This document shows, in pieces, positions 3,819-62,384 of a stretch of 64,000 nucleotides of DNA. The first letter of the stretch is position 1; each line of letters begins with the position of its first letter. Below the pieces are notes generated by a model, which was not told the origin of the DNA, did no database searches, and was given only the letters and a program-made list of their open reading frames with translations. The stretch is from Macrostomum lignano (Eukaryota). The translations under genes and the position numbers were made by a program. Where the stretch lies: contig NIVC01000671.1 of assembly GCA_002269645.1 (NCBI GenBank), positions 186,001-250,000 of the forward strand, given 5' to 3'.

Positions 3819-6484
3819 ATGAGTTTTCTAGGCCTCCATACAACTGAGGCTAGACGGACTTCATCAACCAGCTGCAAGTATGCCAGACGGTCGGCCATTG
3901 TCAAACTGCAGACGCCTTCTTCAATTGCGTCAGAGAGCCGCCGGAAGTGCGCCAGCGTCGGACCCGGCGAGTGGCAGCCGCAGGAACTCGGTGAGCTGAG
4001 CTGACGCAATAGTTGCTCTGTAGCTCGTAGGGAAACCTTAATTGTGGCTAAGCAGATTTAGAGCAGCATGAAATTAGCAATGAACCTGTTTGTTTCCCTT
4101 CTTTGTTTAGTGGATTTTGTAAGCATAGCATAGTTCTGAACTTATCAGGGTGTTTCAAAGTATACTTTTCCGAATGGTACTCAGGTGGCTCTCAGAAGCG
4201 CTCGTCTCAATCTGCTGGTCAAACTCAGCATCACGACGATGACAGCAGCATCAAGGACGCGAGCTTCTCCAGACCGAGGCGGCCGATTCGATCAGCGTCC
4301 GTGCTGGCGACGTCTCCAACTGGACCCTCTAAAGCGGTACCGCCGACGCCGCAGCGTTCCATGTCGGTGCTGCCGCCCGGATCGCGACGTCCCAGCATCG
4401 ACTCTGTCGGCGCGGCCTCCAGATCCGCCCGGCCAGCCGGCCTGGATTTTTCCGACGGGATGACGCGCTCTGGCCGGATCGACGAGCGAGACGAACTCAC
4501 CGGGAGCGAGTGCGACGACGCTGATGACGTCTTCGCTCCCATGGACGAGCGAGTCCAGACTATCGACTTCTCAAGAATGCGAACACAGAGCATCCAGATT
4601 ACTAAGAACGAGTTGCGTAAGAAAAAGGACACCTTGGCAGTGATAAAGAAGCAGGTGAAGCACTTCTTTCACGAGAATCGAACCGGACCCGAGACTGACG
4701 AGCAAGGCAACGTTGAACTGCCGATGAACCCGTTTGTACAGTCCAGAGAGGATCACGACTCCGGCCTGCTGCCAAGTCAGCGGCTGTTCCGCCTAGCCAG
4801 GCACGAGCAGCAGGAGCTGCGCGATCGGCATCTTAAACACAAGCAGCCCAATGGGCGTCACCGCGTACGGAGTGAAAGTGTTGATGACTACGAGTTCGCC
4901 TGGATTGTAAAACGCGTTTCCAAGAGCCCCGCTGCAGCAGCGAGCAGCAGCGCAGTGAGTGTCAGACATGACGAGCTCGGCGATGCACAAGCGGAAGCAA
5001 TAATGGTAGAGACCGGAAACAAACCAACAGAAGGCAACACACATGCGTCAAAAATTGGCTCGGATACCGTCGACTTTCAGGAGCGGGTGAACATGTTTCT
5101 TCAAGTCAAGAAGCCGAGCTCACTGGGGGTGCACAGCGAGTGTCCGGATGATTTGGAGCAAGTGAAAACGCGTCGGGCTCAGCTACTGTTCATGAATGGC
5201 TTGGTTGAGTCGCCACCGACAGACGCTCTCAGTCCAGAAGAGCGCGAGATACTTCAGAGCCGTCTGCTCGACCGAAACGGCAGTTCTGTTGACTTTGAAG
5301 ATGGTGGTAGATTTCCGTGCGACTGCTGCGGGTCGGCTGGCTCACTTGATGTCGACACGAGCCAGTCGGCCGCCAGATATTACGATCTGCTGTTTGCGCG
5401 CAGGAAGAACGACAGCTTCACGGTGCGATTCGATCTGGTGCACTGCCTGCCCAGGTTCCTGCTGCACTACAAGTTCCACAAGCAGCTGTACGACTGTCTG
5501 GACGCAGCGGAACGGCAAGACCTTGTGAAGGCGGCCACGGATATCACCACAAGCTACAACCTTGGCCATTGCACGCTGCAGATACCCCACGGAAAGTATC
5601 GCACCAATGCCTACCCGGCGTTCTTCGCTTACATCATTGTTCCGGACCACACCAAGTACCTGGAGATTTTCGAGGCCTGCAATCCGCCTGTAAAGCCGGG
5701 CGTGCGCCAGAAAAAGAGCAGCTGTGCGATCCCCAACTGGCCCGACAAGAGCTACGTGACCGAGTTCTGGACCTACTCCAAGGAGAGCTCGAGACCCAGC
5801 GACAAGGATCCAGGACTATCAATGAAGCTGTACGAGAAGAACGTGCTTCGCAAGCTGCAGCTGGTCAAGATGCCGGAGCTGCTGGTGACGCGCCGGAACC
5901 CGCGGTCGGAAGTTGCAAAACGGAAGCCCGCAAAGCAGCTGCGGAGAGAATTCGACCTGTTTGAGGACTTTTTGCTCATCCCGCACCAGGAGCAGCCAAT
6001 GCTCGGTTTCGGCTCACTTGAGGACCCAAAGCACGCCTTGGAATCGAGATCACCAGAGCCGGACATCAAGTTCCTGGACCGCCTGCTGCAGGCGATGAAC
6101 AGCTACGTCAGGCAGCACCTCAACACCCGACAGAGGCGACTGGATGGTAGGGAAGACCTGAGCTGCACTGTGAACCTCAGCCTGCACCACAGCTACGCGT
6201 TCAAGGGCCACCAACGGGTCTACGGCTTCATCGGCTTCCCCCCAGCCTCCACCTACTGGGCGGCTCTGGTGCAGGAGCAGCGGAAGAACGCCGCCCTGGC
6301 TGAGACGGCCGTCACTCAGGAGGACATCCGGCTTATGCGGGTGCCCGCGGTAAAGCTGGACAGAGTCAAAGAAGAAGGCAGCAGCAAAACTGAGGAAGAG
6401 GTTGCGCCTGCCGATGTGAAAGAATCGCCTGAGGACTTCATGGATGCAGTGCTGGCGAGACTGAATGGATGTCGAATGCAGTAG
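3819..6484 (+). CDS. Uncharacterised ~820-aa protein: disordered Ser/Arg/Asp-rich N-half, globular C-half
   Basis: GC-rich 793-codon ORF 4103-6484. Likely model join(3819..3990,4185..6484): donor CTCG|GTGAGC at 3991 and acceptor TCAG| at 4184 are both phase 1 and read ...QELG-GSQKRSS. The start codon is uncertain and an upstream exon near 3553 is possible. Confidence 0.75.
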
Positions 6485-6489
6485 CCAGC

Positions 6490-6618
6490 GCTTGTACTCT
6501 TGTACTTTTGTACTCTTGTACTCTTGTACTCTTGCACCCTTGTATTCTAGCACTCTTGCATTCCAGCACTCGTACTCTCGTACTCTTGTACTCTATAATT
6601 CTTGTACTTTTGTACTAG
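6490..6618. repeat. Degenerate 8-bp tandem repeat (TACTCTTG)n just after the stop codon
   Basis: Directly visible. Confidence 0.8.
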
Positions 6619-7467
6619 AGCTCCGCGCACTGATGCGTGCTCTGCAAATACACGTAAACTGCTTACTAATTTGCTTGTCAACCAGAGATGAGAAATTTTT
6701 CTCTAAAAAAGCTTATTCCAGCAAGGATTGGTTTAGTATTTTATCCCGTTGGTTCACCTGATGATGGAAATCATTGGCACTGTAAAATTCCATCATATCA
6801 TGCATTGTTTCTTTTTTCAATGAGGGAACTTGAACAAATGCTACCTGGTATTTTAATATATTATTACGAGCATAGTATTAAATATATTTCAATTAAGTTC
6901 AGTGCAGCACTGACTGCATTGCACCTCCTATTTATACACCAGTGAAAACACTGCCTATTTTTCATTTTTATCCGGTTATTAAATAATGGCCTGCTCGATA
7001 CTGCCTACTGATAACAGAGTAAAAGTAGAGCGTTACGATCGCGACGCGATTCTGTTGCAAAGGTAGGAATAGTTAGAGAACAATGAAATTGCTTGATAAG
7101 TGAGAAATAGTGGATATTTGTGACACAAGAAGTTTATTACAACACAGGCACTATTAACATCAAAGCTGCTTCTATTTATGTCGGAACGCAGCAAGAAATC
7201 AATGCAATTGGATCAGATATAGCTCATATTTGTAATATCGCGTTATTGACAGAGATCGACAGTAATTATTAAACTGTTATAACGTGCAGGTAATACACTG
7301 CAAGTACGGCACTGGCACGTAATAAACACACTTAGGATTTGCAGTGCAGGTGCAATATTATTAATTAGAAAGAAAATCACCAACTTTATAAATTTTGCGA
7401 CAAAACCATGAAAACAGACAAAAAACTTGCAAGTAGCGCATCTCAAGGTGGTAGCGCTTATCAATCA

Positions 7468-7940
7468 ACCAGGGACACCTGGAACCAGGGACACCTGGAA
7501 CCAGGGACACCTGGAACCAGGGACACCTGGAACCAGGGACACCTGGAACCAGGGACACCTGGAACCAGGGACACCTGGAACCAGGGACACCTGGAACCAG
7601 GGACACCTGGAACCAGGGACACCTGGAACCAGGGACACCTGGAACCAGGGACACCTGGAACCAGGGACACCTGGAACCAGGGACACCTGGAACCAGGGAC
7701 ACCTGGAACCAGGGACACCTGGAACCAGGGACACCTGGAACCAGGGACACCTGGAACCAGGGACACCTGGAACCAGGGACACCTGGAACCAGGGACACCT
7801 GGAACCAGGGACACCTGGAACCAGGGACACCTGGAACCAGGGACACCTGGAACCAGGGACACCTGGAACCAGGGACACCTGGAACCAGAGACACCTGGAA
7901 CCAGGGACACCTGGAACCAGGGACACCTGGAACCAGGGAC
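7468..7940. repeat. 16-bp minisatellite (ACCAGGGACACCTGGA)n, about 29 copies
   Basis: Near-homogeneous array; the unit contains the dyad CCAGG-GACA-CCTGG. Confidence 0.95.
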
Positions 7941-8150
7941 TAATTTTTTGAGAAAGTTGAGAAAAGTGACTCATTTCAGAAATAGAGAAAATAATTGGCA
8001 ACAACAGTAATTAAGTGTCCACAGAAAAATAAAAACTTTCTATATTGCCAAATTGTATACATTAGTACGAGTTAGTTTCACTAACTAGTAAAGTCGTGCG
8101 AGTAAAAGGTGACACAGGGCGGCAGTGCGTAGCGGCAGCGTCCCGGCACG

Positions 8151-27383: not shown

Positions 27384-30300
27384 TCATTGGGCTTTCGGTG
27401 GGTCAGGGGGCGTCGAGCTGGACTCGCGTCTCAGCCACGCCTCATAGTCCATCAGGTAGTGCATGAAGAGCTCGGCTGTAAAGTTCCAATTGAAATTTGA
27501 TTTGTTCGGTGATTGTGTTGTTGGATGTACTTTAGAGTAGCGTCTGATGGCGATCCGCAGCCAGCGAGGAGGAAGGCACACGCTCAATCAATCAGTCAAT
27601 CAATCAATTAACCAATCAATCAATCAATCAATCAATCGATCGATCAATCAATCAATCAATCAATCGATCGATCAATCAATCAATCAATTTTTAATTAATC
27701 AATCAATCAATTAACCAATCAATCAATCAATCAATCAATCGATCGATCAATCAATCAATCAATCAATTAATCAATCAATCAATCAATCAATCGATCGATC
27801 GATCAATCAATCAATCAATCAATCAATTAATCAATCAATCAATCAATCAATCGATCGATCAATCAATCAATCAATCAATTAATCAATCAATCAATCAATT
27901 AATCAATCTATCAATCTATATATCTATCAAGCAATCCATCAATTCATCAACCTATCAATTACGCTCGTAATTAATCAATCAATCAATTAATCAATCAGTC
28001 CATTATACATTTTGCGACCAATTATAGAGGTTTAGGGTTGGACGGATTAGCTTAGCGTATCTCCATCCCAATCTACAATGAATTTTTACAATTATATGTT
28101 CGGTCTAAAGAGTATAATTTTATACAGAATTACTAGAAGCGAGTTCAAGCCAATTAAATTGCAAAGAAATTAATAAACAAAGCCAATGTCGCTTTAAAGT
28201 TGTAGTGAATGTCAATGGAGACGCATATACGATCTCTTTCTCTACGAGCTCTCACAACCCACATCGGCTCACCGGAGGTGTGCGCCAGGTAGCCAGCAGG
28301 TGGCAGCTTTCTGGCCAGCTTGCGCACATAGCTCTGCTCAAGCACCACGGCTGGGTGAGTCCGCTCGGGCGCCACTATGGCCGAGCCGAGCTCGTCCAAG
28401 CTGTCCGCCACCGGCTGGCCGCTGAAATCCAAGCCTTGGGCATCGTCTGAAAGAAGAGAATGAGGCAAAGGAACATCATCTGAATGACGTTAAGATGCAA
28501 CCCGTAGGAGTGTTTGTCTTGATTGACTTTCTGCAAGCAATATGCAACATGCTCGTAGACTGTGCTACCATATCCCCATGACAAACCTGCATGTTGCTAA
28601 CCGATTTAACTTGAAAGGAAAACCCTCTCCTACTTGAGGAGAGTAGCTAGACGTTTCACGTTCAAAATAGGAGGTAAAAAAGTGTACTTAGGCATCACTT
28701 CTAACCTCGATGCGAGCTTTCTGGGTGGGAACGCGGTTTGGAGTGGGATTGGCCATAGACAAAACTCGATATGGAAGAAGTGCAATTTGTTCCCCTGGCC
28801 TATATACCAAGTTGATGTGTCCTAAAGTTGGGACTGACATCGGGGGGGGGGGTTTAACACAGACTATATTGCATTTTCACAGCCAATTGGGCCTAGGAGC
28901 GAGTAATTTTATCCTTAGCGGGAGAATCGAGCTGTTGAAGAATTGATTTTCATAGTCTATGGCCCAAGCTTAATCCTTAGCGGGAGAATCGAGCTGTTGA
29001 AGAATTTCTTTTCATTGTCTATGGCCCAAGCCTAATTCTTAGCGGGAGAATCGAGCTGTTAAAGAATTTCTTTTTATTGTCTATGGCCCAAACCTAATCC
29101 TTAGCGGGAGAATCGAGCTGTTGAAGAATTGCTTTTCATAGTCTATGGCCCAAGCTTAATCCTTAGCGGGAGAATCGAGCTGTTGAAGAATTGCTTTTCA
29201 TAGTCTATGGCCCAAGCTTAATCCTTAGCGGGAGAATCGAGCTGTTGAAGAATTGCTTTTCATAGTCTATGGCCCAAGCTTAATCTTTAGCGGAAGAATC
29301 GAGCTGTTGAAGAATTGCTTTTCATTGTCTATGGCCCAAAGGGGGGGGGGTCAGTGGTGCAAGCAACTTGAGAATTTGGGCCGCGCAATTAATCCTTTCC
29401 ACAGTATATCTTTCTTGTATTTGCTGAAGCAGCGTCTGCAAATGGTTGACATGCCAACATACAATTGGCATTGACACTTTGATTTCAGTTGAAACAAATC
29501 AAAACGGACAAAGGCAAAAGCAGGGATGAGACAAGGATTACAGATTATACAACTACAGGGAGAATAAAATGCGAACAGCCTTCTAATGCCTAAAAAATGT
29601 TTCCCATCGTAAAGTTCAGCAGATCAGGAGACGGTTAGTACGCAAATGCATTGTTTGCTTGCGTCGACTGTATCTGATGGGGGGGGGTTCTGAGCTGCTG
29701 AAGGGATGCATGCTCGTACTTTGGCATTTATCATGGGTGCCAATTTTGTGGCAACATCAGACCCAGCCAGGCCGACACACCACGGACAGGCAACAAAGCA
29801 ACTCACACAGCAGAGCCCGCAGCGCCGGCCGCAGCTGAAACCAGCAGTTGGTGAGGAACAGCACGATAACCCGACGGCCCAGCCATTCGGCGAACATCAC
29901 GCAGTGATAGAACACCGCCGATCTCGCGCTGTGCTCGGTGAGCAGCACCAGCACGTGACCGCAGGCGGCCATGGCGGGCCCGTTCTTGCGCAGAAAGTCG
30001 TCCCTGGACTCGCCGAGCTCTTCAACGTGGCTAACGCGAACTCGGCGACGCTCCAGCGCGAGTTTCAACACGTCCCGAGTTTTGGCGTCCCGGCGCGGAT
30101 CGCAGACGAGGAACACGCAGCCGGGGCGCGGCTTCGTCAGGCGGCACCGGCCGCTCCAGCTGTCACGCTGCTCAGCCTGCAGGCGGTTCAGAATCTCTCT
30201 TGTCAGCTTCTTCCTAGACAGCTGCACGTCCACCCGAAGGGAGCCGGCCAGGTCAGCGTCCGTCAGGCTGTAGGCCAGGAAGCCGTCCACTCCCTGCTCG

Positions 30301-31102
30301 GCAAACTGCTGCCTGTAGAACTCGCGAATGTCCAGACTGTGCAGCCACTCCTGCAGATCGTTGACAGTCCAGGCCAGGAAGCGCTTGCTGGCGAACTGTC
30401 CGGTGTAGCCCGGTGCCAGCAGCGGCTCCGGCAGCAGCGGCCGGAAGTCGGTGGCGAATCGCTCCAGCTGGGGCGCCAGTCTGGCTGAGCACTGGGCAAT
30501 CAGCTCAGACTCGGCCGCTCCGCGGCGACGCGATTCGGCAATGTCGACCAGCGACGCCGCTGACGCATCGCCGTCGCCGCGCCGTATCGCCTCGGCCAGG
30601 ATTGGGGGACACTGGCGCTCGAGGCCGCTTTGACCTTGGGCGTCGAGCAGTACGGCGAACAGATGCAGCGAGGCACGATTGTCGTGCAGCCGCTCCGCCA
30701 GGGTGCGCATGGTGTGCAGCGCCAGCCGGCTGGAGAAGAAGGACTCGGACAGGAACAGCACAGCGGCGAAGCACTTCTCGGCCGCCTCCAGGCTGCAGGC
30801 CACCCAGGCGCTGCTCTCGAAGAGGCCTTCGTCTTTGTCGAACCAGACGCTGTCAGCCAGGCCAACGGCCTTGAGCTCCTTCACCAGGCGGGCGATGAAG
30901 CGCTTTTCTAGGAAACCAGCCTCCGGGCTGTACGCTACAAATATGCTGGCCTTCTCGCGGCTGTTGCCAGTCGAGTCGGCGGTCACTTCAGGCGCCGCCG
31001 CCTCAGCCGAAGTTGACGCCGCTGCATCGTCTTCTGTCAGCTCCGCCGGCTGACTGCCGATTCCGTCGTGGCTCTCAGAGGCCGCCAGCTTGCCGTAGCG
31101 AT
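27384..31102 (-). CDS. TIR-SAM-TIR protein, 5'-incomplete, at least 519 aa
   Basis: complement join(29807..31102,28273..28446,27384..27475), all phase 1. TIR1: SIFVAYS...VWFDKD...FAAVLFLSESFFSS. SAM: WTVNDLQEWLHSLDIREFYRQQFAEQGVDGFLAYSLTDADL. TIR2: VFLVCD...HVLVLLTEHSARS...GRRVIVLFL...RALLY|DAQGLDF. The first exon seen starts in phase 1 without an ATG. Confidence 0.85.
27585..27995. repeat. (ATCA)n microsatellite with GATC and ATTA variants
   Basis: Directly visible. Confidence 0.9.
28908..29340. repeat. 62-bp tandem repeat, about 7 copies (TTAGCGGGAGAATCGAGCTGTTGAAGAATT...GTCTATGGCCCAAGCTTAATCC)
   Basis: TTAGCG recurs at 29101, 29163 and 29225. Confidence 0.92.
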
Positions 31103-44529: not shown

Positions 44530-45052
44530 AAAAATCTTAACAGAATCCAACAATCACTGAATCCAGAAATCAGTGAATACCACAATCACTGAATCTCCAA
44601 CAATCAGTGAATCCCCAACAGTCACTGAATCCTCAACAATCAGTGAATCCCCAACAATCAGTGAATATCCAACAATCCCCAACAATCAGTGAATCCCCAA
44701 CAATCAGTGAATATCCAACAATCCCCAACAATCAGTGAATCCCCAATAATCAGTGAATCCCCAACAGTCACTGAATCCTCAACAATCAGTGAATCCCCAA
44801 GAATCAGTGAATATCCAAGAGTCAGTGAATCCCCAAAAATCAGTGAATCCCCAATAATTAGTGAATCCTCAACAATCAGTGAATCCCCCAAGAATCAGTG
44901 AATCCTCAACAATCAGTGAATCCCCCAAGAATCAGTGAATCCCCAAAGAATCAGTGAATATCCAAGAATCAGTGAATCCCCAACAATCAGTGAATCCCCA
45001 AGTATCAGTGAATGCTCCAAGAATGTGTGAATCCCCAAGAATCAGTGAATCA
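44530..45052. repeat. ~18-bp minisatellite (ATCAGTGAATCCCCAACA)n
   Basis: Directly visible. Confidence 0.88.
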
Positions 45053-45241: not shown

Positions 45242-48200
45242 TCAGGCGGAATACTGGCACACGAAGCGGAGGTGTCGGTGACAGGCCGCCGGTAGCCAGC
45301 CGCCGCTGCCGCCGCCGCCAGCGCCGCTCAGGCTGGAGACGCCGCTCATGGCCACGCAGTTGAACTGCCAGTCCAGCTCCGCCTGCTCGGTCCCCGCAGC
45401 AAAGTTCCGGTAGCCTTCGCTGCGAGCGACCGGCCCGCCAACCCAGACGAACCGGCCGCCGGATCTGTACATGCCGATCCAGCTGGCGCCGACCAGGTGC
45501 GCGAACACCTCCGCGTTCTCCTCCGGGCTGTCAATCACGGCCAGGTCGGCGCCCATTGATCGGCAGGTTCGCCGGGCGTCGGCCCAGTCAGAGAGGCCTC
45601 GGCTGAAGAAATAGGCGGACCGGCCGGAGCGGGACACCTCGCAGGCCGTCCACTCGTCCGGGTGGCAGCGATGCACTGTGGGACGTCGGGTGGATGACGG
45701 GTATGCGACAAATGAATGATAGCTAGATTACAGGTAACATTTAGATAACAGCTAGATTACAGCTAGAGGACAGATAGATGACAGCTAGATTACAGGTAGA
45801 GGGCAGATAGATAACAGCTAGATTACAGGTAACATGTAGATGACAGCTAGATTACAGCTAGAGGGCAGATAGATGACAGCTAGATTACAGGTTGATGACA
45901 GCTAGATTACAGATAGATGACAGCTAGATTACAGATAGATGACAGCTAGATTACAGAAGGATGACAGCTAGACTACAGATAGATGACAGCTAGACTAAAG
46001 ATAGATGACAGCTAGATTACAGATAGATGACAGCTAGACTACAGATAGATGACAGCTAGACTACAGATAGATGACAGCTAGACTACAGATAGATGACAGC
46101 TAGACTACAGATAGATGACAGCTAGATTATAGAAGGATGACAGCTAGATTACAGATAGATGACAGCTAGATTACAGATAGATGACAGCTAGATTACAGAT
46201 AGATGGCAGCTAGATTACAGAAGGATGACAGCTAGATTACAGAAGGATGACAGCTAGATTACAGATAGATGACAGCTATATGACAGATATGATCAGATGA
46301 TCAGCTGTATGATCAGCTGTATGATCAGCTATATGATCAGACAGATAAATGACAGCTAGATTACATATAGATGACAGCTATATTACAGATAGATGACAGC
46401 TATATTACAGATAGATGACAGCTAGATTACAGGAGGATGACAGCTAGATTACAGAAGGATGACAGCTAGATTACAGATAGATGACAGCTAGATTACAGAT
46501 AGATGACAGCTAGATTACAGATAGATGACAGCTAGATTACAGATAGATGGCAGCTAGATTACAGAAGGATGACAGCTAGATTACAGATAGATGACAGCTA
46601 GATTACAGAAGGATGACAGCTAGACTACAGATAGATGACAGCTAGACTACAGATAGATGACAGCTAGATTACAGATAGATGACAGCTAGACTACAGATAG
46701 ATGACAGCTAGACTACAGATAGATGACAGCTAGACTACAGATAGATGACAGCTAGACTACAGATAGATGACAGCTAGATTACAGATAGATAACAGCTAGA
46801 CTACAGATAGATGACAGCTAGACTACAGATAGATGACAGCTAGACTACAGATAGATGACAGCTAGACTACAGGTGAATGACAGCAAGATTTCAGGTGGGT
46901 GACAAGTAGATGATGACAGGTAGATGACAGGCAGGTGACAGGCAGATGACAGGCAGGTGACAGGCAGGTGACAGGCAGGTGACAGGCAGATGACAGGCAG
47001 GTGACAGGCAGGTACTTTTGGGACAGCCCTCGTAGATCAAAGTTGGTCTCACCAGTCCACAACTGGAGGCTGGCATTGCGCTTCGCGGTTCCGCCGGACT
47101 CAGCCAGGCTGTCGTAGCGGCAGCGCCGGTCCCAGCTGTAGCCGATGATGAGGGGCCGTTTGGCGGCGGGCGCTTTGAAGTAGCAGCTGCGCGAAGGCGT
47201 GAGGCTGGACACCGAGAACAGCACCGACCGAAGGTAGTCGGTGGGCTCCTCCGTGAGGCTTTGACTGCGAGAGAAATGGCGAGAGATATTGATAGTTCAT
47301 TAGGTCTTTAGAACCTTTACGCGGTCAACGGAATTGCTGTTTTCGCAAAAGAAATCTAATTATTAACTTGAAAAGTCTGAAGCCAAAGCTTCAAAGAAAA
47401 GAATCCTAAAGAGTAAAGGGTTCGCGATCCGTTAGGGTGATGCACCGTTCCTTTTAATCCGAACCGAAGATCAAACCCTAGGATTAATGATAATCCCTTG
47501 AAGTCGTTCATCTTTCTCGTGTCATCCGGAAAGTTCTTTTTATTCGAAAAATATCCAACAACCTACGAACGTACATATAGTACTACAGGATAATACTACA
47601 GTAAATCCTGTGCTCAAATCCCACATCCTGTGCTCAGATCCCACATCCTATGCTCAGATCCGACTTACTATGCTCAGATCCCACATCCTGTGCTCAGATC
47701 CCACATTCTACGATGAGATCCCACATCCTATGCTCAGATCCGACTTACTATGCTCAGATCCCACATCCTGTGCTCAGATCCCACATTCTACGATGAGATC
47801 CCACATCCTATGCTCAGATCCCACATCCTGTGCTCATATCCCACATCCGTGCTCAGATCCCACATCTTGTGTTCAAATCCCACATCCTATGCTCAGATCC
47901 GACATCCTGTACTCAGACCCCACATCCAATGCTCAGGTCCCACATCCTGTACTCAGACCCCACATCCTATGCTCAGATCCGACATCCTGTACTCAGACCC
48001 CACATCCAATGCTCAGGTCCCACATCCTGTACTCAGACCCCACATCCTATGCTCAGATCCGACATCCTGTACTCAGACCCCACATCCAATGCTCAGGTCC
48101 CACATCCTGTACTCAGACCCCACATCCTATGCTCAGATCGGGCCACATCCTGTGCTCATATCCCACATCCTGTACTCAGACCCCACATCCTATGCTCAGA

Positions 48201-51200
48201 CCCCACATCCCACAATTCGAACCTCACATTATGTGCTCAGATTCCGCATCCCACTACACAGATGCTGAGCTTCATCATCCCCCATATCAAGCCAAGCTCC
48301 CACCCGGCGCATCTCACACCAGCGCCTCGCAGGCCGCCCGGCTGCTGCAGGCTACTCGCAGCTCCGCTGTCTCGCCGTCGGCGGCAACGCCGAGCCGAGC
48401 CACCCGCAATCCCGCCGCAGTGCTCTCCTCGGCCACGCCGACGTCCCAGAGTTCGGCGAAGCGCAGCAGGGAGCCGGCCTCCAAGGTGGACAGCGACAGC
48501 TGCTCCTGCACCGCGGCCAGCACGCCGTGGCTTCGCAGCATCAGCCGGACGCTGACGAACTCCTCGCTGCTGAGAAAGTCGCGGCCCCGGCTCAGACTCG
48601 AACTGGCATTGTTGCCATGGAAACAGAGCAGCGGTTCGATCAGCAGGCGGCGCTGATGCGGCACCTCGCCGGGCTGCTGGTAGACCGCCACCGGGCACCC
48701 GTCGATGCTCAGGATGCGCAGCAGGCGCGGCGCCTCGTCGGCGGGGCACTCGCCCACCGCTGGCAGCTTCAACCGGAGGGCCTTGAGCGGCAGGCGGAAG
48801 TCACTGGCTGCAGAGGTCGGCTGCTGGTAAATGGCGGTCGACAGCTCGCAGTCGGCGACGTTAGCCATGAAGGTTGTCAGCTGGATTCGCTCGAACAGCA
48901 GCCAGGGCTGCGCGGAGAGATTGGAGCTGCGGGATGATGGAGAGCCTGTCACCTGTTCTCCGATCGTGATCAGGTCCCGAGATCCCAATCCGAGATCCCA
49001 ATCCGAGATCCCAATCCGAGATCCCAATCCGAGATCCCAATCCGAGATCCCAATCCGAGATCCCAATCCGAGATCCCAATCCGAGATCCCAATCCGAGAT
49101 CCCAATCCGAGATCCCAATCCGAGATCCCAATCCGAGATCCCAATCCGAGATCCCAATCCGAGATCCCAATCCGAGATCCCAATCCGAGATCCCAATCCG
49201 AGATCCCAATCCGAGATCCCAATCCGAGATCCCAATCCGAGATCCCAATCCGAGATCCCAATCCGAGATCCCAATCCGAGATCCCAATCCGAGATCCCAA
49301 TCCGAGATCCCAATCCGAGATCCCAATCCGAGATCCCAATCCGAGATCCCAATCCGAGATCCCAATCCGAGATCCCAATCCGAGATCCCAATCCGAGATC
49401 CCAATCCGAGATCCCAATCCGAGATCCCAATCCGAGATCCCAATCCGAGATCCCAATCCGAGATCCCAATCCGAGATCCCAATCCGAGATCCCAATCCGA
49501 GATCCCAATCCGAGACCACACCAGCTTACCTGAGGTCCCTGCAGGCAGCCCAGGTCTGGCAGAGCACCCGGAACTGGCCCCGGCTCCTGTCCACGCTGGC
49601 GGAGAAGCTGTCCAGCTGGTAGGCCTCGCTGCCCAAGTCCCTCCGAGTCAGATTCACCTTGCGCACCTGGAGAAATGACACCCGCTTGGGCGCTAGATTG
49701 GCGAGCTGGGCGGTCACGGTGTCCAGCACGGACTGGCGGCTGAGGTCGACGCCCAGGCTGGCGTAGGGGCTGCCCGTGAGGTAGTTGAAGCCCAGCTCAA
49801 CCCTGCCGTTGAAGCAAAACAGCGGCTCGATGTAGAACTCCGCCTTGGTGTCCTCGCGCTTGTGCACCACGGCGGTGCAACCGTCCACCGACTTGACGCT
49901 GAACAGGCGCATCGGCAGGGGCCGAGGGCAGCCGGGGAGGCGGCGGGTTTTGCCGTTCAGGTAGCTCAAATCGAAGTAGGAGGCGCTGCGACTCAAAATT
50001 TGCTTGCGCAACAGCTGCGGCATCCAGCAGTCGTAGCTGGGCAGATTTGCCGTGATCTCGAGGTTGAAGTTCTCCAGCAGCAGGGTGCTGTTCTGCAGCA
50101 TGTTCGAGCTGCGGAGCAGGGGCCAATGGTGACTGATTGAGAAGAATAAAGGATTGGGATCAAGGAATAGAGATCAAGGATCAGATTGGGGATCAGGAGA
50201 ATCGGGATGATCTAAATCAGGAAGGAGGATCGGTATCAAGATCAAGGATCGGGTTATCAGGGATTAGGGATCACGAATCGGGGATCAAAGATAAAGGATC
50301 AGGAATCAGGGATCAGGGATCAAGGATCAGAGATCAGGGATCAGAGATCAGGGATCAGAGATCAGGGATCAGAGATCAGGGATCAGAGATCAGGGATCAG
50401 AGATCAGGGATCAGAGATCAGGAATTAAGGATCAGGGATCAGGAAAATAATCGATGGACCATGGATCGAGAATCCGCATTCCAGGCGTTCGAGACGCAGC
50501 GGTCTGGATTGAGGACAATGTAGTGGGTAGCGCCGGCTCACTGCAGAGTCCTGCACACTCTGCCGCTCAGGCAGTGAATCCGCAGTTCGGCTTCGCTCCT
50601 ATCGAAGGCCACTTTGAAATCGCCGGCCTCGAGTCCCGGCAGCCGGGTCCTCGGTCTCAGCCGGAGGTTCCACAGCTCCATGAAGTCGATGGTGTCCTCC
50701 GCCGGGATGTCGGCGGTGTCGCTGGTCCCGCCGGAGTCCGCGAGGCCTCGGCGAACTTCGCCAAGCAGGGAATCGTTCGCCAGCGCCATTCGCAGACTCA
50801 GGTAGGGCAGGTTGCGCACGTAGTCAAAGTGCAGAGTGGGCGGCTGCCGGTCCAGGCAGAAGGCCGGTTCGACAAAGAGGCTCTGGCCGCCCAGGAGGTT
50901 GCGGGACCGGTGCAGCACCAGCTGGCAGGAGCCGGTCGGCTGCACCGGTGCCTGCACCCGGGGATAGGCGGCCTCGGCGCACACCAGCCGCGGCGGCGAC
51001 TTCTCCCTGAGGTAGGCCAGGTCTACGAGATGTCGCCTGGCCAGGATCAGCTTGCCAATGGGCTCCGGTGCTAGGCAGCCGTCGTCAGGCGTTGCCATGG
51101 TGATGTTGATTTGCAAGCGCTCGAGCAGAAGTTCGCTGGACTTTGACAGGTAGTTCCTGGAGATTAGTTAAGCAAGTCGAGAGTTGAGAAAGTCAGGTTA

Positions 51201-54200
51201 AAAAAAGCAGCCTGCACTAACCGCAGCGAATTTTGCTTAACTTTTCAGGCACTGACAGCAGTTATATCCAATCTCTGAGCTAGATTGCTTGGTTGCTAGG
51301 ATACCTGGTTGCTAGGATAGCAGGTTGATAGGATACCAGGTTGCTAGGATACCAGGTTGCTAGGATACCAGGTTGCTAGGATACCAGGTTGCTAGGATAC
51401 CAGGTTGCTAGGATACCAGGTTGCTAGGATACCAGGTTGCTAGGATACCAGGTTGCTAGGATACCAGGTTGCTAGGATACCAGGTTGCTAGGATACCAGG
51501 TTGCTAGGATACCAGGTTGCTAGGATACCAGGTTGCTAGGATACCAGGTTGCTAGGATACCTAGAATCGTTAGACCTAGAATCGATACCAGGTTGCTAGG
51601 ATACCAGGTTGCTAGGATACCAGGTTGCTAGAATACCAGGTTGCTAGGATACCAGGTTGCTAGGATACCAGGTTGCTAGGATACCAGGTTGCTAGGATAC
51701 CAGGTTGCTAGGATACCAGGTTGCTAGGCAATGTAATCGGAGCCAGTAACTATGGAAGCCAGTTTAAAACCGACCTAAGCCCGGCGCAGGCGGCCAGCCG
51801 GTCGCAATAGAGCCGCAGAAAGCCGTCCCGCTGGTTGTAGGAGGCGTAGAATTCCACGGCCGTCACGCCGCTGATGTTGGCAGTCGGCCAGATGCTGAGA
51901 TTGCCGATCATGGCGAACGCAACCGAGCGGAACCTGTCCAGGTGGGTCAAATTCCGCCTAATTAACGCCAACGCGTCGTCGCTCTTTAGGTCGACCCGGC
52001 AGCTGACGAAATGCGCAGATCTGGCGTAGTCGAATCCGACGCTGAACGCCGCCTTAAGACCGTCGTTGCGCAGCAGGAAGATTGGCTCGATTAGGAAGTC
52101 ATCCAGCTGAGATGAATGACTGCCTGGATGGTCCTGCCGTTTCCACAGCACCAGCGGCTGGCCCCGGTAGCTCACCACCTTCGCCACCTGCGGCTGCATC
52201 GACAGGCGACAGCGGGACTCATTGCCAGGCCGATCTGCCTGCCAGTGGCGCTGCAGCTCGGACACTGGGAACTGGGACAGGTGCGGCACAATGGGCCTGC
52301 GCTGCACCCAGTAGACTGGCGACTCCTCGCACGATGAGGACGCCGCAGAGGAGGCAGGCGCCTCGTCCGGCGAGAAGGCAAAGCTGAACTGCAGCGCGTC
52401 GAATAGCAGAGTTGGATTGGCGGCAATCTGCTGCCTGGGATGTTCGGGAGGGGTTTCTGTGATCAATCTAGTCTGTGTTCGCTCTCGGCCAATCAGATTA
52501 GAGATTATTTCAGGACGCGTGAGGTGGGTGTCCTTTGACTTTGGCGCTTATCCAATCAGATTAGAGATGATTTCAGGACGCGTGAGGTGGGTGTCCTTTG
52601 ACTTTGATGCGTATCCAATCAGATCAGAGATACATGTGTGGAGTGAGATGATCGAAAATCTAAAGTACAAGGAGTTTGTATTGGCCTCTTAATGTTCAAA
52701 TCAAAACTCTTTTTTATTTTAACATACGAATTTCGAGTCAAAACCCTAATACTCTACTGTTAGTATCAAGCAGGCTGAAATATTTCATATGCTTTGCAAC
52801 ATCAAATCAAGTGGAACGGTTTAAATTTCGTTTCTTAGAAAACACTTCAAAGGTGTAGGCTTTTCGGGAAAATACACTATCGAGGCAGGAGTTGGGGTTA
52901 GGGTTAGGGTTTAGGTTAGGGTAGGGTTAGAGTTAGGGTAGGGTTAGCGGTCCAGCTGGACCCCTGAGTACTCGTAGGAAGCGCGAGAATGCTCACCTCA
53001 GCACTTCAGCAGCCTTGGCACCCGCTGCTGTGTCGTTCGGCGCCATCAACCGGATATGGGCGACCTCCCGGTTGGTGGACAGCCGCAGTCGGTCCACTTT
53101 AAAGCCGGGCAGGCGCTTGCGGCCTTCCAGACGCCAGTCGACGAGGTGCAGGTAGCGCAGACTGGGAACTGGCCTGTTGGGCTGTCGCAGCCGCTTCACT
53201 GCGGCGCTTCTGATGTCCGACTGGCGGAGGCTCAGGCGGAGGGGCACGTGGGGGCTGCGGAGCGGTGCACTGGGTCAGGTAAACTTTGGGGAGACCTTTT
53301 CTAATGTCATTGTTACCAGCACATTGAGTAATCTGGGGATCTATGCAAATTTTTCAACTCAGGAGCTGAAGGGATCAGAGATCTTGAAACTGTAGGATCT
53401 GGTATTACAGCTAGGATCTGGGATTTTTAATTAAATCAGAGCATTGATTTAGCGTTTTATGACTGGGATTTGGGATCTGGAATTTGAGAACTGGGATTTG
53501 GGGACTGAGATTTGGGAACTGGGGTTTGGGATCTGGGATTTGGGAACTAGGATTTGGGAACTGGGATTTGGGATCTGGGATTTGGGATCTGGGATTTGGG
53601 ATCTGGGATTTGGGATCTGGGATTTGGGGACTGAGACTTTGGAACTGGGATTTGGGAACTGGGATTTGGGAACTGGGATTTGGGAACTGGGATTTGGGGA
53701 CTGAGACTTTGGAACTGGGATTTGGGAACTGGGATTTGGGAACTAGGATTTTGGGTACTAAAACTCTACGATAAGAACGTAGGATTGATGATCTGAATTG
53801 TCAATCTGGGATTTGGGATCTCGAATGCAGCAGTTAAGTCTCACCAGCCGCTGGCGTTCCGAAACCCTCGGGCGGTGACCGCCTCCCCGGTCTGCAGGCT
53901 GAGCAGCGGCTCCAGCCAGAACTCGCTCGGCGCCCTAGCCGCCACGGACTCGCGCCTCGTCAGCACAAACACCGGCCTGCCTTTGATGTAGAAATCCCGG
54001 TACAGCACCAGCTGGGGCGCCGGCTTGGAGCAGGCCGTCAAGTTGCGGCTGTCGTCGACATCGGGCGGGCCGGACGCGTCGCCGACGCTCCGGCGGGCGA
54101 AGTGCGCGACGTCGATCTGCGAGGCGGCGGGCACCACCACCGGCTTGGTCAGGTTTGCAACGGAGGCGCAGCCGTCGGGCGACACGGCGGAGTCCAGGCG

Positions 54201-55356
54201 GAGCAGGAAGCGCTCAAAGATCCCAACGCTGCCACTCAACAGCTGGGATCTGAAAAATTTTTCAGCATCGATTTTTATGGGAGTTGAGTTGTCCCATAAT
54301 GGGATTTTAGACATCCCATACTGGGATCTTGAATTTCTCATAATGGGATCTTGGATTTTCTAAAATGGGATCTTGGATATCCCATATTGGGATCTTGGAT
54401 ATTTCATATTGGGACCTTGGATATCCCATCATGAGATCTTGGATATCCCATAATGGGATCTTGGATATTCTAAAATGGGATCTTGGATATCCCATATTGG
54501 GATCTTGGATATTTCATATTGGGACCTTGGATATCCCATAATGGGATCTTGGATATCCCATAATGGGATCTTGGACATCTCATAATGGGATCTGGGATTT
54601 CCTGAGATGATCCTAGATGATCCATGATTACTCGTGATGGATTTTCTCGAGATGGGGTCCGAAATTTCCTGAGATAGGAGTTTCTAAGTTGGTATCTGGG
54701 ATTTCTTGCGATGGGATCCGTGTTGGAATAAGGGGAGATCTGAGAGATTTTTTGAGATTGTGATCCGAGATCCCTCATGATGAGGCATTGGGATGCAGTT
54801 CATAATCGCGGACATGCCTGAGTTCCACGCAGGCCCGCTGGTGCGGGCAGTTGATTCGCAGGTAGCCCAGCTGGCCCTCCGAGCTGAGCCGGAGGCTCTC
54901 CATCTTCCAGCCGCCAGGCAGGCGTCCCTCGGCCTCCGCAGGCGGCAGGCTGGCCCCGGCCGGCCGCAGGAAGGCCACAGACCGAGGCGCGGCATGCCGC
55001 AGCCTCTCCCTGGCCTGGTGCAGCAGCTCGTCATCTCGCAGAGCCACGGGAAAGCTCAGGTAGTGAACTTCGGTCAGCCGGTCAAACCGGACGCACGAGG
55101 CGTTGATGACGGCCTCGACGGGCTCGGTGGTTGGCAGGGACAGCAGCGGCTCCAGCAGGAAGTGGCCGCGCCGGTCCAGGCGCTGGTGCACAAACACGGG
55201 CACCCCGGCGAGTTCCAGGGTGGTCCAGTGGCGCAGCAGGCCGGGGCTCGGCCTCGTACAGTTGCCGCTGTCGCCGGCTTCAACGAATTGTTCAGCGGCC
55301 AAGGTGGCGGAGACACCAGTGAGGAGCAGCAGCAGGGCGTTAAGAACTGGCGCCAT
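45242..55356 (-). CDS. Secreted ~1435-aa protein: signal peptide, six tandem copies of an unrecognised ~200-aa domain, linker, C-terminal C-type lectin domain
   Basis: complement join(54814..55356,53845..54242,52997..53254,51775..52434,50542..51156,49530..50108,48318..48926,47053..47264,45242..45675) = 4308 nt, phase-consistent and stop-free. N-terminus [21 protein letters not shown]. Lectin domain: YFFS...[24 protein letters not shown]...WIGM...NCVAM...W...C...FVCQ. The first donor (CAT|GTCCGC) is the weakest junction. Confidence 0.85.
45715..47012. repeat. 22-bp minisatellite (GACAGCTAGATTACAGATAGAT)n followed by an 11-bp (TGACAGGCAGG)n
   Basis: Fills the last intron of the lectin gene. 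Confidence 0.93.
47608..48215. repeat. 20-bp minisatellite (TGCTCAGATCCCACATCCTG)n
   Basis: Directly visible, intronic. Confidence 0.9.
48975..49515. repeat. 13-bp homogeneous minisatellite (GAGATCCCAATCC)n
   Basis: Fills about 90% of intron 48927-49529. Confidence 0.97.
50150..50440. repeat. 7-bp repeat (GATCAGG/GATCAGA)n
   Basis: Intronic, degenerate at the edges. Confidence 0.85.
51290..51728. repeat. 16-bp minisatellite (GGATACCAGGTTGCTA)n
   Basis: Directly visible, intronic. Confidence 0.95.
52489..52625. repeat. Tandem duplication of a 62-bp unit
   Basis: CCAATCAGATTAGAGAT...TTCAGGACGCGTGAGGTGGGTGTCCTTTGACTTT occurs twice. Confidence 0.8.
52895..52947 (+). repeat. Short interstitial telomere-like tract, degenerate (TTAGGG)n
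   Basis: GGGGTTAGGGTTAGGGTTTAGGTTAGGGTAGGGTTAGAGTTAGGGTAGGGTTAG. Confidence 0.75.
53460..53755. repeat. ~14-bp repeat (TGGGATTTGGGAAC / TGGGATTTGGGATC)n
   Basis: Intronic. Confidence 0.88.
54285..54600. repeat. ~22-bp repeat (GGATCTTGGATATCCCATAATG)n
   Basis: Intronic; contains the dyad ATCCCAT-A-ATGGGAT. Confidence 0.85.
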
Positions 55357-58346: not shown

Positions 58347-61300
58347 ATGGCAACTGACTTGGCAAAGGATCGAGCTGCTCGAAACCTCAGGAAGCAGAGT
58401 TCAATTCCTTCAGGAGGGGGGCCCATCGTACAGTTGAAGCACTTCGCTGGCGGAAAATACAAGCAGTGAGTTGCCCTAATTTCTATAGTGTAGTATGCAA
58501 AGCTTATTAAAAGTGCATTTCCCCATTATCCCCAACTAATCTTGTGATTAACTAACTATTACAGAGATGGGAGCCTCATCAGTGAGGATTATGATAGTGA
58601 CAGCAGGTTGTTGAATTTTAACGCCTGAATGGTTTTTATTTCATATAAACAACCCAATAAGAATCCATTTTTAACAAAACTGAAGCACATATTAATTGTA
58701 CTAGAAACAAAGCCCAGCTGACACCTATAAGTAGCATATCTGTTTTTGTTACATAATTACCTAATTTTAAGTTCCTTGCTTTTTGCAATTTAAAATTGAA
58801 CTGCCAATCTTTTTCAGCCACACTCCTATCCCTTAATAATAAAGGGTGCCTGCAGTAAGTGAAAGTTTCTATTTTGGTTTTGATGACAATTAAAATAAAA
58901 AGCATGTATGATGTTTTTTTATCATTTCTTTAATTAGTCTTTAATGCTTTGTTATATTTTGTCACTTGCTCATTATGTTGGTCTCGCATTCTTATGTTCA
59001 GTCTGGGCAATTATTTAATTTTGTTTTGCACTACAAGAGAAGCTTTTGTTTATTTGTTAGCTCGAATCTAGTCAAACTTCTGAGCACTTCTACTACTGAA
59101 ATCTTTTTATTTTCTAGCACAAGTTTTGGTCATCTAAAATTGTCTGCATTCTTTGGTATTACAGTCTATAAAATGCAATCTTGAAGTTTTTAATGCATGA
59201 ATATTTTCGATTTGCATACTCTTTTGAGTTAATCTGTCTGACCTATGGAGTTGAGCATGTATGACCTATGAAGTGGATCCTGTATGACCTATGGAGCTGA
59301 TCCTGTATGTATGACCTATAGAGTTGAGCATTTATGACCTAGACTGGATCCTAAATGACCTATGGAGTTGATCCTGTATGACCTATGAAATGGACCCACA
59401 TGGCCTAGACATAGATCTTGTCAGACTAAGAATTGATCCATCGATCCACTAGGAGCTGATTCCCTACCAGAATTCTACTCTGGGAGGTTGGTCATAGGGG
59501 GTCATGACATCCCCTGCTTGACTAAGCCAGTGTCCCTACCGACGACCCAAGGTCACCGGCCTCCAGCTCATTTCTAAGAAAATCAATTCTCCCGCCTCAC
59601 TGCGCTGGCCGCAGCTCCATCAGTGTCGCGTCTCAAGCTCAAGCGGAAGCTGAGCAGCAGCAACAGCAGCCGCAGGCGCAGTCAATGGGCCCCGCAGTTC
59701 GCCTGGAAAACACCTATCAGCTCGGCCCCTCGGCCACTGGCCAGTTCCCGCTCGGACAGGCTGGCCGAGTTCTGGGCCAAATTCTCCGGGACTACCTGGA
59801 CGGGGAGAGCTACGGGGAGGAATTCGCTCGGACAGTGAGCCAGAGCATTAGCCAGGTGAGCTTGACAGGCGATTTGCTAATCTGATTAGAGTTTGTGATT
59901 TTGCGGTCGCTAAGACCGGTTCTGACTCATCTCGTTCGCTGCTTGAACTGGCTTTTTCCTATTTTTATGGACTTGTTTTTTCAATCTTCCAGTTTCCAAA
60001 CCAAATCGTCTGCTTCTAACTATATCTTTCAGGATTTGCTTTTTCTTAATCGTCTGTTTAAAATCGTCAGTTTCCTGGTTTACTGTGTTCGAATGTTTAC
60101 CAAATAGTACTATTTCCGAATTTACTGTTTCCGAATTTACTGTTTCCGAATTTACTGTTTCCGAATTTACTGTTTCCGAATTTACTGTTTCCGAATAATC
60201 TGTTTTCGAATAATCTGTTTCCGAATCATCTGTTTCTGAATCATCTGTTTCCGACTTTACTGTTTCCGAATTTACTGTTTCCGAATCATCTGTTTCCGAA
60301 TCATCTGTTTCCGAATCATCTGTTTCCGAATCATCTGTTTCTGAATCATCTGTTTCCGAAAAAACTGTTTTCGAATAATCTGTTTCCGAATAATCTGTTT
60401 CTGAATCATCTGTTTCCGAATAATCTGTTTCCGAATAATCTGTTTCCGAATCATCTGTTTCTGAATCATCTGTTTCCGAATTTACTGTTTCCGAATCATC
60501 TGTTTCTGAATCATCTGTTTCCGAATAATCTGTTTTCGAATAATCTGTTTCCGAATAATCTGTTTCTGAATCATCTGTTTCCGAATAATCTGTTTCCGAA
60601 TAATCTGTTTCCGAATCCTCTGTTTCTGAATCATCTGTTTCCGAATTTACTGTTTCCGAATCATCTGTTTCTGAATAATCTGTTTCCGAATAATCTGTTT
60701 TCGAATAATCTGTTTCCGAATAATCTGTTTCTGAATCATCTGTTTCCGAATAATCTGTTTTCGAATAATCTGTTTCCGAATAATCTGTTTCTGAATCATC
60801 TGTTTCCGAATAATCTGTTTTCGAATAATCTGTTTTCGAATAATCTGTTTCCGAATAATCTGTTTCCGAATCATCTGTTTCTGAATAATCTGTTTCCGAA
60901 TAATCTGTTTCTGAATCATCTGTTTCCGAATAATCTGTTTTCGAATAATCTGTTTTCGAATAATCTGTTTCCGAATAATCTGTTTCCGAATCATCTGTTT
61001 CTGAATCATCTGTTTCCGAATAATCTGTTTTCGAATAATCTGTTTCCGAATAATCTGTTTCTGAATAATCTGTTTCCGAATAATCTGTTTCCGAATAATC
61101 TGTTTTCGAATAATCTGTTTCCGAATAATCTGTTTCTGAATCATCTGTTTCCGAATAATCTGTTTTCGAATAATCTGTTTCCGAATAATCTGTTTCTGAA
61201 TCATCTGTTTCCGAATAATCTGTTTTCGAATAATCTGTTTTCGAATAATCTGTTTCCGAATAATCTGTTTCCGAATCATCTGTTTCTGAATAATCTGTTT

Positions 61301-62384
61301 CCGAATAATCTGTTTCTGAATCATCTGTTTCCGAATAATCTGTTTTCGAATAATCTGTTTTCGAATAATCTGTTTCCGAATAATCTGTTTCCGAATCATC
61401 TGTTTCTGAATCATCTGTTTCCGAATAATCTGTTTTCAAATAATCTGTTTCCGAATAATCTGTTTCTGAATAATCTGTTTCCGAATAATCTGTTTTCGAA
61501 TAATCTGTTTCTGAATAATCTGTTTCCGAATAATCTGTTTCCGAATCATCTGTTTCCGAATAATCTGTTTTCGAATAATCTGTTTTCGAATAATCTGTTT
61601 CCGAATCATCTGTTTTCGAATAATCTGTTTCTGAATCATCTGTTTCCGAATAATCTGTTTTCGAATAATCTGTTTCTGAATCATCTGTTTCCGAATAATC
61701 TGTTTTCGAATAATCTGTTTCCGAATCATCTGTTTTCGAATAATCTGTTTCTGAATCATCTGTTTCCGAATAATCTGTTTTCGAATAATCTGTTTTCGAA
61801 TCATCTGTTTCCGAATCATCTGTTTCCGAATAATCTGTTTTCGAATAATCTGTTTTCGAATCATCTGTTTCCGAATCATCTGTTTCCGGATCATCTGTTT
61901 CCAAATCGACAGTTTCCGAGTCATAATTTCGAATTACCGTGTCTAAATTACTTTTTCCGAATTTACTGTTTCCGAATCATCTGTTTTCAGATCATCTGTC
62001 TCAAAATCATTTATTTCCGGGATTACTTTATTCGAATTTACTGTTTCCGAGTTTACTGTTTTCCATCTGTTCCACAACCGTCTACTTTCTAATCTGAACC
62101 GTGTGCAGTTTCCAACAAGTTTATATCCGAAACTCAACAGCTTCCAGATGAATCCCAACCCCCCGCCATCGCAGGTAATCAGAAGCCGCATGAAGGAGCT
62201 GCAGTCGCCGGCAGGACGCTACAAGGTGATCTCTCTGTGCAGCATCGGAGCCAGAGGCCCGCACGGCCTCAGCATGGCCAGCCGCTGTCTGTGGGACGAT
62301 TCTGTAGACAATTTTGTCAGCAGCCAGTTTGACAACAGCTCGCTGTACGCTGTAGCCACCGTGTTTGTCGTTTATCAAGAGTAG
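58347..62384 (+). CDS. TCTEX1D1: Tctex-1 domain-containing dynein light chain (TCTEX1D1/DYNLT5-like), 203 aa
   Basis: join(58347..58465,58565..58606,59615..59855,62175..62384) = 612 nt, phases 2,2,0. Motifs RLENTYQLGP, RYKVISLCSIG, ASRCLWD...DNF, NSSLYAVATVFVVYQE*. The two 5' exons are less certain, and orthology within the Tctex1D family is not established. Confidence 0.85.
59235..59400. repeat. Degenerate ~23-bp repeat (TGACCTATGGAGTTGATCCTGTA)
   Basis: About 7 imperfect copies in an intron. Confidence 0.65.
60110..62065. repeat. 15-bp minisatellite (GAATAATCTGTTTCC / GAATCATCTGTTTCT)n, about 1.9 kb
   Basis: Fills intron 3 of the Tctex gene. Confidence 0.96.

Follow-up and report, generated by a model that had tools for sequence, protein, structure and literature searches.

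Collectins and ficolins are secreted recognition molecules in which a collagen stalk is joined to a C-type lectin or a fibrinogen-like head. In the VIgL family of the snail Biomphalaria glabrata, a multigene family that binds parasite surfaces, immunoglobulin (Ig) domains are combined with a fibrinogen-related domain (FReD), a C-type lectin or a galectin head (PMC5433772). Among flatworm proteins, the adhesive protein Mlig-ap1 of Macrostomum lignano is built from Lys/Arg-rich regions, von Willebrand D, C8 and TIL domains, 17 EGF modules plus a C-type lectin domain (PMC6410801). The present work concerns another gene of M. lignano, which encodes six tandem copies of an apparently undescribed module followed by a single C-type lectin-like head. 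It occupies positions 45242-55356 of a 64,000-nucleotide (nt) stretch of DNA, termed the window, which corresponds to positions 186,001 to 250,000 of contig NIVC01000671.1 (NCBI GenBank assembly GCA_002269645.1). Coordinates given below are those of the window unless another contig is named.

The protein is already on deposit as a "hypothetical protein" (GenBank PAA78696.1), and its family label in UniProt is "C-type lectin domain-containing protein". New here are the recognition that the module constitutes a family, the apparent novelty of its fold, the offset between its structural and exon boundaries, the two types of head that follow it, and the conserved phase-2 exon unit in which it is carried.

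Gene model and features of the encoded protein

The exons were rebuilt from splice sites, the acceptors of exons 2 and 3 being set by comparison with relatives. The resulting coding region lies on the minus strand, begins with an ATG at 55356 and closes with a stop codon ending at 45242. It consists of nine exons, in which each structural domain, as explained below, is divided into a core and a C-terminal extension. Module matches refer to a profile (A5) made from a 24-row alignment of family domain copies.

55356-54818, minus strand: exon 1; start codon, signal peptide and domain 1 core; GC donor, phase 2; A5 profile match 5e-39
54249-53845, minus strand: exon 2; domain 1 C-terminal extension, linker and N-terminal half of domain 2 core (WLEPLLSL)
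53254-52997, minus strand: exon 3; C-terminal half of domain 2 core, without the C-x5-C pair
52434-51775, minus strand: exon 4; domain 2 extension, linker and domain 3 core (LIEPIFLL); phase 2 at both ends; E 2.5e-66
51156-50542, minus strand: exon 5; domain 3 extension, linker and domain 4 core (FVEPAFCL); phase 2 at both ends; E 7.5e-66
50108-49530, minus strand: exon 6; domain 4 extension, linker and domain 5 core (YIEPLFCF); phase 2 at both ends; E 1.6e-73
48926-48318, minus strand: exon 7; domain 5 extension, linker and domain 6 core (LIEPLLCF); phase 2 at both ends; E 5.2e-67
47264-47053, minus strand: exon 8; domain 6 helix-strand extension and spacer; phase 1 donor; A5 profile positions 143-175, E 7e-4
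45675-45242, minus strand: exon 9; long-form C-type lectin-like domain and stop codon; PF00059 match 7e-11

The spliced product of 1436 amino acids (aa) is identical, residue for residue, to PAA78696.1 (M. lignano BOX15_Mlig001890g2, Mlig001890.g2), which comes from an annotation set derived from RNA-seq by genome-guided assembly (PMC5730564). Additionally, an ortholog of 1462 aa, 48% identical to the M. lignano protein, is encoded on an intron-less 4758-nt contig (run SRR30276812) and is colinear with it over the signal peptide, six repeats, spacer and lectin domain. Because the product equals the RNA-seq-based annotation and is colinear with the intron-less contig, the nine exons form one gene, which is transcribed. 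The earlier note on this DNA had proposed exactly that; its coordinates, 45242-55356, proved exact, and its length of 1435 aa has been corrected to 1436. Two further genomic copies are nearly identical, namely Mlig001546g1 (seven substitutions and a 2-aa indel) and Mlig001894g2 (annotated N-terminus truncated), in agreement with the redundancy described for the M. lignano assembly (PMC5730564). Mlig-tuf2 (PMC12732829), an intestinal gene that is specific to the species and has a weak CLECT match, was ruled out as the identity of this gene, being the separate locus Mlig020807.

Two junctions deserve mention. The acceptor of exon 2 (ttttcag/A, the slash marking the splice site) yields the junction protein CVEL-R-SQLL, which is the same in the GenBank models and in the ortholog. 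Intron 1 is a GC-AG intron with the donor CAG/GCATGT at 54817, and this GC donor is fixed because the junction protein permits no other. Domain 2 is the sole domain interrupted by an additional intron, and exon 8 represents the front portion of a repeat-unit exon without its core. At codon 315 (53254, first base of exon 3), the present copy encodes Cys (TG/C); Trp stands at this position, together with H317Y, in both other genomic copies and in the ortholog. This copy therefore carries an additional Cys, which is probably unpaired.

The signal peptide covers aa 1-21 (nt 55356-55294), so that the mature protein starts with AEQ. It is the only 19-residue window with hydrophobicity above 1.6, and a scan of the whole protein found no membrane span. 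The protein is thus predicted to be soluble and, as the earlier note had also held, secreted. The mature chain has a mass of about 157 kDa, an isoelectric point of 8.9, 17 N-x-S/T sequons and 38 Cys, of which four (C88, C315, C546 and C1270) fall outside the predicted pairs; Lys accounts for 2.0% and Arg for 9.8% of its residues. In the ortholog, aa ~40-97, immediately after the signal peptide, form a Thr/Pro/Ser-rich mucin-like tandem repeat (DVPSATT-like) that has no equivalent in the M. lignano protein.

The repeated module and its predicted fold

The claim that the protein carries six highly diverged copies of one module is well borne out. All 15 pairs of repeats are similar by phmmer (E 2e-4 to 4e-18), with the best of 1200 shuffled repeats reaching only E 0.01, even though identity among the repeats is as low as 19-31%. 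All six EP motifs quoted in the earlier note were found in the protein. The ending [LF]-R-x-x-C-x5-C-x-x-L occurs in repeats 1 and 3-6; its Cys pair is missing from repeat 2, as previously noticed, and is likewise missing from repeat 2 of the ortholog. The A5 profile recovers six module copies in the window (E 1e-31 to 1e-73), and a profile scan of the rest of the window found no more module copies and no FReD. Across the family, the motif reads G-C ... F-x-[IVL]-E-P-[LIAQT]-[LFIM]-C ... F-D-Y ... Y-x-S-L-x-V-x-L, helix, S-V-x-F, continued by L-R-x-x-C-x5-C-x-x-L, helix, strand and C, with a phase-2 intron after C-x5-C-x-x-x. The E-P dipeptide is invariant in 24/24 aligned domain copies and one Arg is near-invariant.

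The boundaries of the module had to be redrawn. In every family protein, the first module begins directly after the signal peptide at profile position ~55-60, and an extra "helix + strand + Cys" segment, here exon 8, always follows the last module. Therefore, the structural domain consists of a ~140-aa core plus a ~35-aa extension and is offset by ~55 residues from the exon unit, which amends the earlier note; the six copies it described are real. A first AlphaFold model, made for the exon-defined unit of exon 5 with 11 sequences, combined parts of two structural domains; it reached a predicted local distance difference test score (pLDDT) of 74 and a predicted template modelling score (pTM) of 0.69, and Foldseek found nothing for it in the PDB. 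The second, made for the structural unit of domain 5 (49930-48848) with 24 sequences, reached pLDDT 88.4 and pTM 0.82. The five models of the structural unit range from 85.7 to 88.4, with a pLDDT of ~87 in the extension segment. In the prediction, five strands are followed by a helix, about four strands, two helices and two strands; this is an alpha+beta arrangement with two long helices, and the extension is predicted to fold back onto its own core.

The occurrence of Cys across the 24 copies was counted for three pairs:

C24-C45: both present in 18 copies, neither in 6, only one in 0
C130-C136: both present in 20 copies, neither in 3, only one in 1
C7-C166: both present in 13 copies, neither in 4, only one in 7

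This co-occurrence indicates disulfides C24-C45 and C130-C136, as expected in an extracellular domain. A further disulfide, C7-C166, is probable from the alignment and would pin the extension to the beginning of the core.

No known family could be assigned to the module. Pfam-A gave no repeat match in the exon translations at E<=1, nothing beyond Lectin_C for the whole protein at E<=10, and no family common to more than one of the 24 domain copies at E<=10. The repeat profile found nothing significant among PDB sequences (best E 0.43), and Foldseek found no structural neighbour in the PDB for the pLDDT-88 model, the best match having a template modelling (TM) score of 0.25 or less and E 0.028. 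Two UniRef entries for fragments of the same protein bear domain names, UniRef100_A0A1I8HC86 (~aa 713-1291) being labelled SHR-BD and A0A1I8HD81 (~aa 188-590) CAP10; both labels are absent from Pfam-A at E<=10 and look spurious. The repeat is thus apparently an undescribed domain with a new fold, as judged from the predicted model. The earlier statement that no family could be assigned has therefore held against Pfam, a PDB sequence profile and Foldseek; neither a confident match of the repeat to a named family nor transcripts dividing the nine exons among separate genes, the two outcomes which that note had named as fatal to it, was encountered.

Alternatively, the searches might have overlooked that the module belongs, in highly diverged form, to an extracellular fold that already has a name, such as a SEA-like or ferredoxin-like alpha/beta sandwich. 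This question stands apart from the roles weighed below, as it does not concern function. Some weak Foldseek matches in the PDB point in this direction, with probabilities of 0.6-0.77, to LuxS, ribosomal protein S24e and PII-like proteins, all of them small alpha+beta sandwiches. The viral database BFVD additionally gave one borderline structural match, an uncharacterised 417-aa protein of Medusavirus stheno T3 (A0A7S7YF07), which aligns to the domain 5 model with E 2.1e-4 and TM 0.45 over 173 columns at 12% identity. However, an overlooked fold is improbable when a model of such confidence finds no better PDB neighbour than TM 0.25, when the first model also came back empty from Foldseek, and when Pfam for 24 copies and the PDB sequence profile were both empty; nor were the SHR-BD and CAP10 names reproduced by Pfam-A. 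A 175-aa extracellular domain that can be confidently modelled from only 24 sequences and lacks a PDB neighbour is well suited for structure determination and could become a new Pfam family.

The head, the wider family and the surrounding window

The C-type lectin cap proposed for this protein is supported by Pfam and by its Cys framework. Exon 9 scores 43.2 bits against PF00059, above the curated cut-off of 22.6 bits, and 37.8 bits when the full protein is scanned. The head is of the long form, with six Cys (C1296, C1304, C1330, C1399, C1424 and C1432), a WIGM motif and a Gly/Ser-rich insertion in its long-loop region. To the canonical C-type lectin domains of CD23, the asialoglycoprotein receptor and DC-SIGN, the C-terminal 140 aa of the protein align at E ~1e-9 to 1e-10; the WIG motif, all four core Cys and the additional N-terminal Cys pair that marks long forms are shared. 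In Ca2+-dependent C-type lectins, EPN/QPD and WND ligate Ca2+ site 2 and the sugar. Unlike in those proteins, EPN/QPD is replaced here by TEQ (aligned to EPT of CD23) and WND by WLP (aligned to WND of the asialoglycoprotein receptor), and the Gly/Ser-rich loop insertion is added; the ortholog has SDY and WVK at the EPN and WND positions. The head is therefore unlikely to bind sugars in the classical Ca2+-dependent manner. With EPN/QPD and WND both missing, it is, on its residues, better named a C-type lectin-like domain.

The distribution of the module was assessed by searching a 12-repeat profile, without a word index, against 1.84 billion representative proteins at E<=1e-3. There were 13 family matches, comprising this gene's own copy, the ortholog, seven M. 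lignano paralog clusters and four short fragments, of which JGI metagenome contigs supplied three and a Logan run the other. All matches that bear an organism name belong to M. lignano, which fits the "lineage-specific" character assigned to the repeat earlier. The range of the module seems to be limited to Macrostomum or near relatives of the genus, with database coverage of other flatworms being uncertain. The paralogs are 350-700 aa long and carry one or two modules followed by a C-terminal Fibrinogen_C domain (7/7 clusters, E 1e-13 to 4e-37), and all full-length paralogs start with a hydrophobic leader.

The introns of the repeat units are all of phase 2 and lie in the fourth codon past the second Cys of C-x5-C. 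An intron matching in phase and, within one codon, in position is found in the FReD paralogs (including PAA89661.1), in an exon 5 homolog on a genomic contig from another run, and in a JGI metagenome contig, where two module exons follow one another. One phase-2/phase-2 exon corresponds to each "extension + linker + next core" unit. The presence of this common phase-2 unit before both C-type lectin-like and FReD heads is the signature of exon duplication and shuffling. It offers a clean case of shuffling at the level of exons, in which one phase-2 unit precedes two unrelated heads and a six-fold duplication is old enough for its copies to be individually conserved.

The age of the array can be read from the ortholog. 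Domains 1-6 are 63, 47, 47, 60, 59 and 56% identical to their ortholog counterparts, and conservation is lowest in the lectin head, which has 42% identity and loop indels. Since the domains match their positional counterparts far better than they match each other, the six-domain array predates the species split; constraint acts on each of the six positions separately, and the array is therefore not a recently amplified spacer. Two tandem FReD paralogs lie 4 kb apart on M. lignano contig NIVC01000142.1. Their 5' halves (signal peptide, module 1, intron and module 2) are 97.35% identical over 1170 nt (2000-3166 vs 5966-7135 of that contig), and their head exons (3278-4175 vs 7234-8009) share 33-65% protein identity. 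This suggests that recombination may keep the arm uniform while the heads diverge, a hint taken from a single case. GenBank PAA89661.1 fuses exon 1 of the first tandem copy with exons 2-4 of the second.

In the lectin gene itself, the coding frames are GC-rich and the intervening stretches AT-richer. Minisatellites fill most of the introns:

45676 to 54817: eight introns, most filled by different minisatellites with periods of 13-22 nt
45742-46952: minisatellite, 22-mer x55
47605-48210: minisatellite, 20-mer x30
48977-49515: minisatellite, 13-mer x41.5, copies 100% identical
51291-51728: minisatellite, 16-mer x27
50256-50442, 53462-53751 and 54292-54602: further intronic minisatellites
44547-45051: minisatellite just 3' of the gene

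The intronic minisatellites give rise to long spurious open reading frames (ORFs) on both strands. Elsewhere in the window, a 409-aa ORF at 29757-30986 (minus strand) matches Pfam TIR_2 at aa 15-116 (2.5e-8) and, after it, SAM_2/SAM_1 at aa 205-266 (2.8e-6). The ORF shares the strand of the lectin gene, ~14 kb downstream of it, and looks like a gene of the TIR+SAM signalling-adaptor type. The order of domains in SARM1 is SAM before TIR, opposite to that of this ORF. The segment 14001-16000 has a GC skew of +0.72 and a GC content of 60%, with long ORFs on both strands and only weak, low-complexity Pfam matches. Two further ORFs, of 793 aa (4103-6484, plus strand) and 664 aa (59910-61904, minus strand), have no Pfam match; the second lies in an AT-rich region.

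Possible roles and comparison with known systems

The earlier note had proposed an extended stalk or multivalent scaffold that might serve in mucus, adhesion, egg coats or pathogen recognition, and any such function is putative. By analogy with known chimeric lectins, the most likely role is that of a secreted recognition protein family that would recognise microbes or foreign surfaces in a humoral or mucosal setting, a reading favoured tentatively, at a little below an even chance. The six domains would form an elongated, glycosylated, disulfide-locked arm, the tip of which would bear a single head for recognition. Within a flatworm-specific recognition family, the module would be the invariant part and the head, C-type lectin-like or fibrinogen-related, the exchangeable part. 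Binding by the head of this gene would be Ca2+-independent or directed to ligands other than glycans, and members of the family would work in body fluid or mucus as soluble recognition proteins. Little is known of the recognition molecules that serve innate immunity in flatworms, and the family offers testable candidates in M. lignano, in which RNA interference and transgenesis are feasible.

Several points weigh against a recognition role. The identifiers Mlig001890, Mlig001546 and Mlig001894 were not found in the searchable texts or supplements of M. lignano papers. Lectin activity in the strict sense is doubtful, given the missing EPN and WND. Recognition lectins usually need multivalency, and the present chain has one head and no recognisable oligomerisation element. 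The arm, being better conserved than the head, could equally be the functional binding part. The rod geometry is putative, only single domains having been folded, and the sampling of flatworms in the databases is of uncertain completeness.

A structural secretion is the first alternative to recognition. In this case, the protein would be a component of mucus, matrix or temporary adhesion (cement), its domains providing a cross-linkable scaffold and its head anchoring it to glycans of other secreted components. A large, secreted, Cys-rich modular protein with predicted glycosylation would suit such a purpose, and C88, C315, C546 and C1270 could form bonds between molecules. Moreover, the ortholog has its mucin-like repeat at the N-terminus, and Mlig-ap1 shows that an adhesive protein of M. 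lignano can include a C-type lectin domain (PMC6410801). However, the M. lignano protein lacks the mucin-like region, and none of the von Willebrand D, EGF, TSP-1 and Lys/Arg-rich regions of known flatworm adhesive proteins is present. The six positions are individually conserved rather than homogenised, and the small paralogs with a FReD head are more typical of soluble lectins. A structural role is therefore considered rather unlikely, albeit worth keeping in mind.

The conservation of the arm also speaks for a second alternative, in which ligands are bound by the repeated domain itself, as a new fold that might be of the lectin, lipid-binding or receptor-binding kind. This would make the protein a hexavalent binder with a degenerate, accessory head. 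Such a view would account for the better conservation of the domains than of the head between species, the invariant E-P with its near-invariant Arg and the loss of canonical sugar ligands from the head; six copies would also supply multivalency without oligomerisation. Yet in the model the invariant residues occupy strand ends or the core and may serve structure alone; the FReD heads of the paralogs appear intact from their strong Pfam scores, which argues that heads matter. Binding by the domain itself is accordingly judged distinctly unlikely.

FReD and C-type lectin heads are not known to be typical of Macrostomum seminal-fluid candidates, which counts against a reproductive function. A fast-evolving seminal-fluid, egg-shell or gamete-interaction protein would suit the mere 48% identity to the sole ortholog found, the apparent restriction of the family to the genus and the rapid evolution reported for Macrostomum reproduction-related genes (PMC7336406), but it is quite improbable, as the protein has no reproductive domain signature, its gene identifiers are missing from the supplements searched for that study, and 48% may be ordinary, the divergence of the ortholog species being uncertain.

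Recognition thus remains the preferred role, and it is best placed by comparison with known systems. From Mlig-ap1, which is likewise a large secreted M. lignano protein with a C-type lectin domain, the present protein differs in that the von Willebrand D, C8, TIL and EGF modules were not found by Pfam; the relationship is limited to the lectin domain. Collectins and ficolins resemble it in joining one type of stalk to either type of head. Unlike in those molecules, the stalk here is made of globular domains, with no run of at least four G-X-Y triplets in the protein, no evident trimerisation element and one head per chain.

The closest resemblance is to the VIgL proteins (FREPs, CREPs and GREPs), in which an N-terminal module likewise precedes a swappable lectin-type head on a secreted protein. 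The Macrostomum counterparts are one or two modules with a FReD head in the paralogs and six modules with a C-type lectin-like head here. In contrast to VIgL, the Macrostomum module is a predicted 175-aa alpha+beta domain with two long helices and not an Ig domain: no Ig family was found in Pfam at E<=10, and Foldseek matches to Fab chains reached a TM score of only 0.13-0.22. Furthermore, the present protein has six copies of its module instead of one or two, and its head is devoid of EPN and WND. VIgL proteins are also marked by pathogen binding, immune inducibility and diversification, for which the tandem FReD pair, with its 97%-identical module halves and diverged heads, is the one hint in Macrostomum. 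By analogy, the protein is taken to work like a chimeric lectin of the VIgL, collectin or ficolin kind while being a member of none. In the fullest version of this proposal, a new fold would serve as the invariant arm of a flatworm-specific humoral recognition family with exchangeable heads, the arm exons being held near-identical by recombination and the head exons diverging. Taken as a whole, this is possible but doubtful. If true, the design of a "constant arm + swappable lectin head" would have been invented independently of the VIgL proteins of snails and of the collectins and ficolins of vertebrates.

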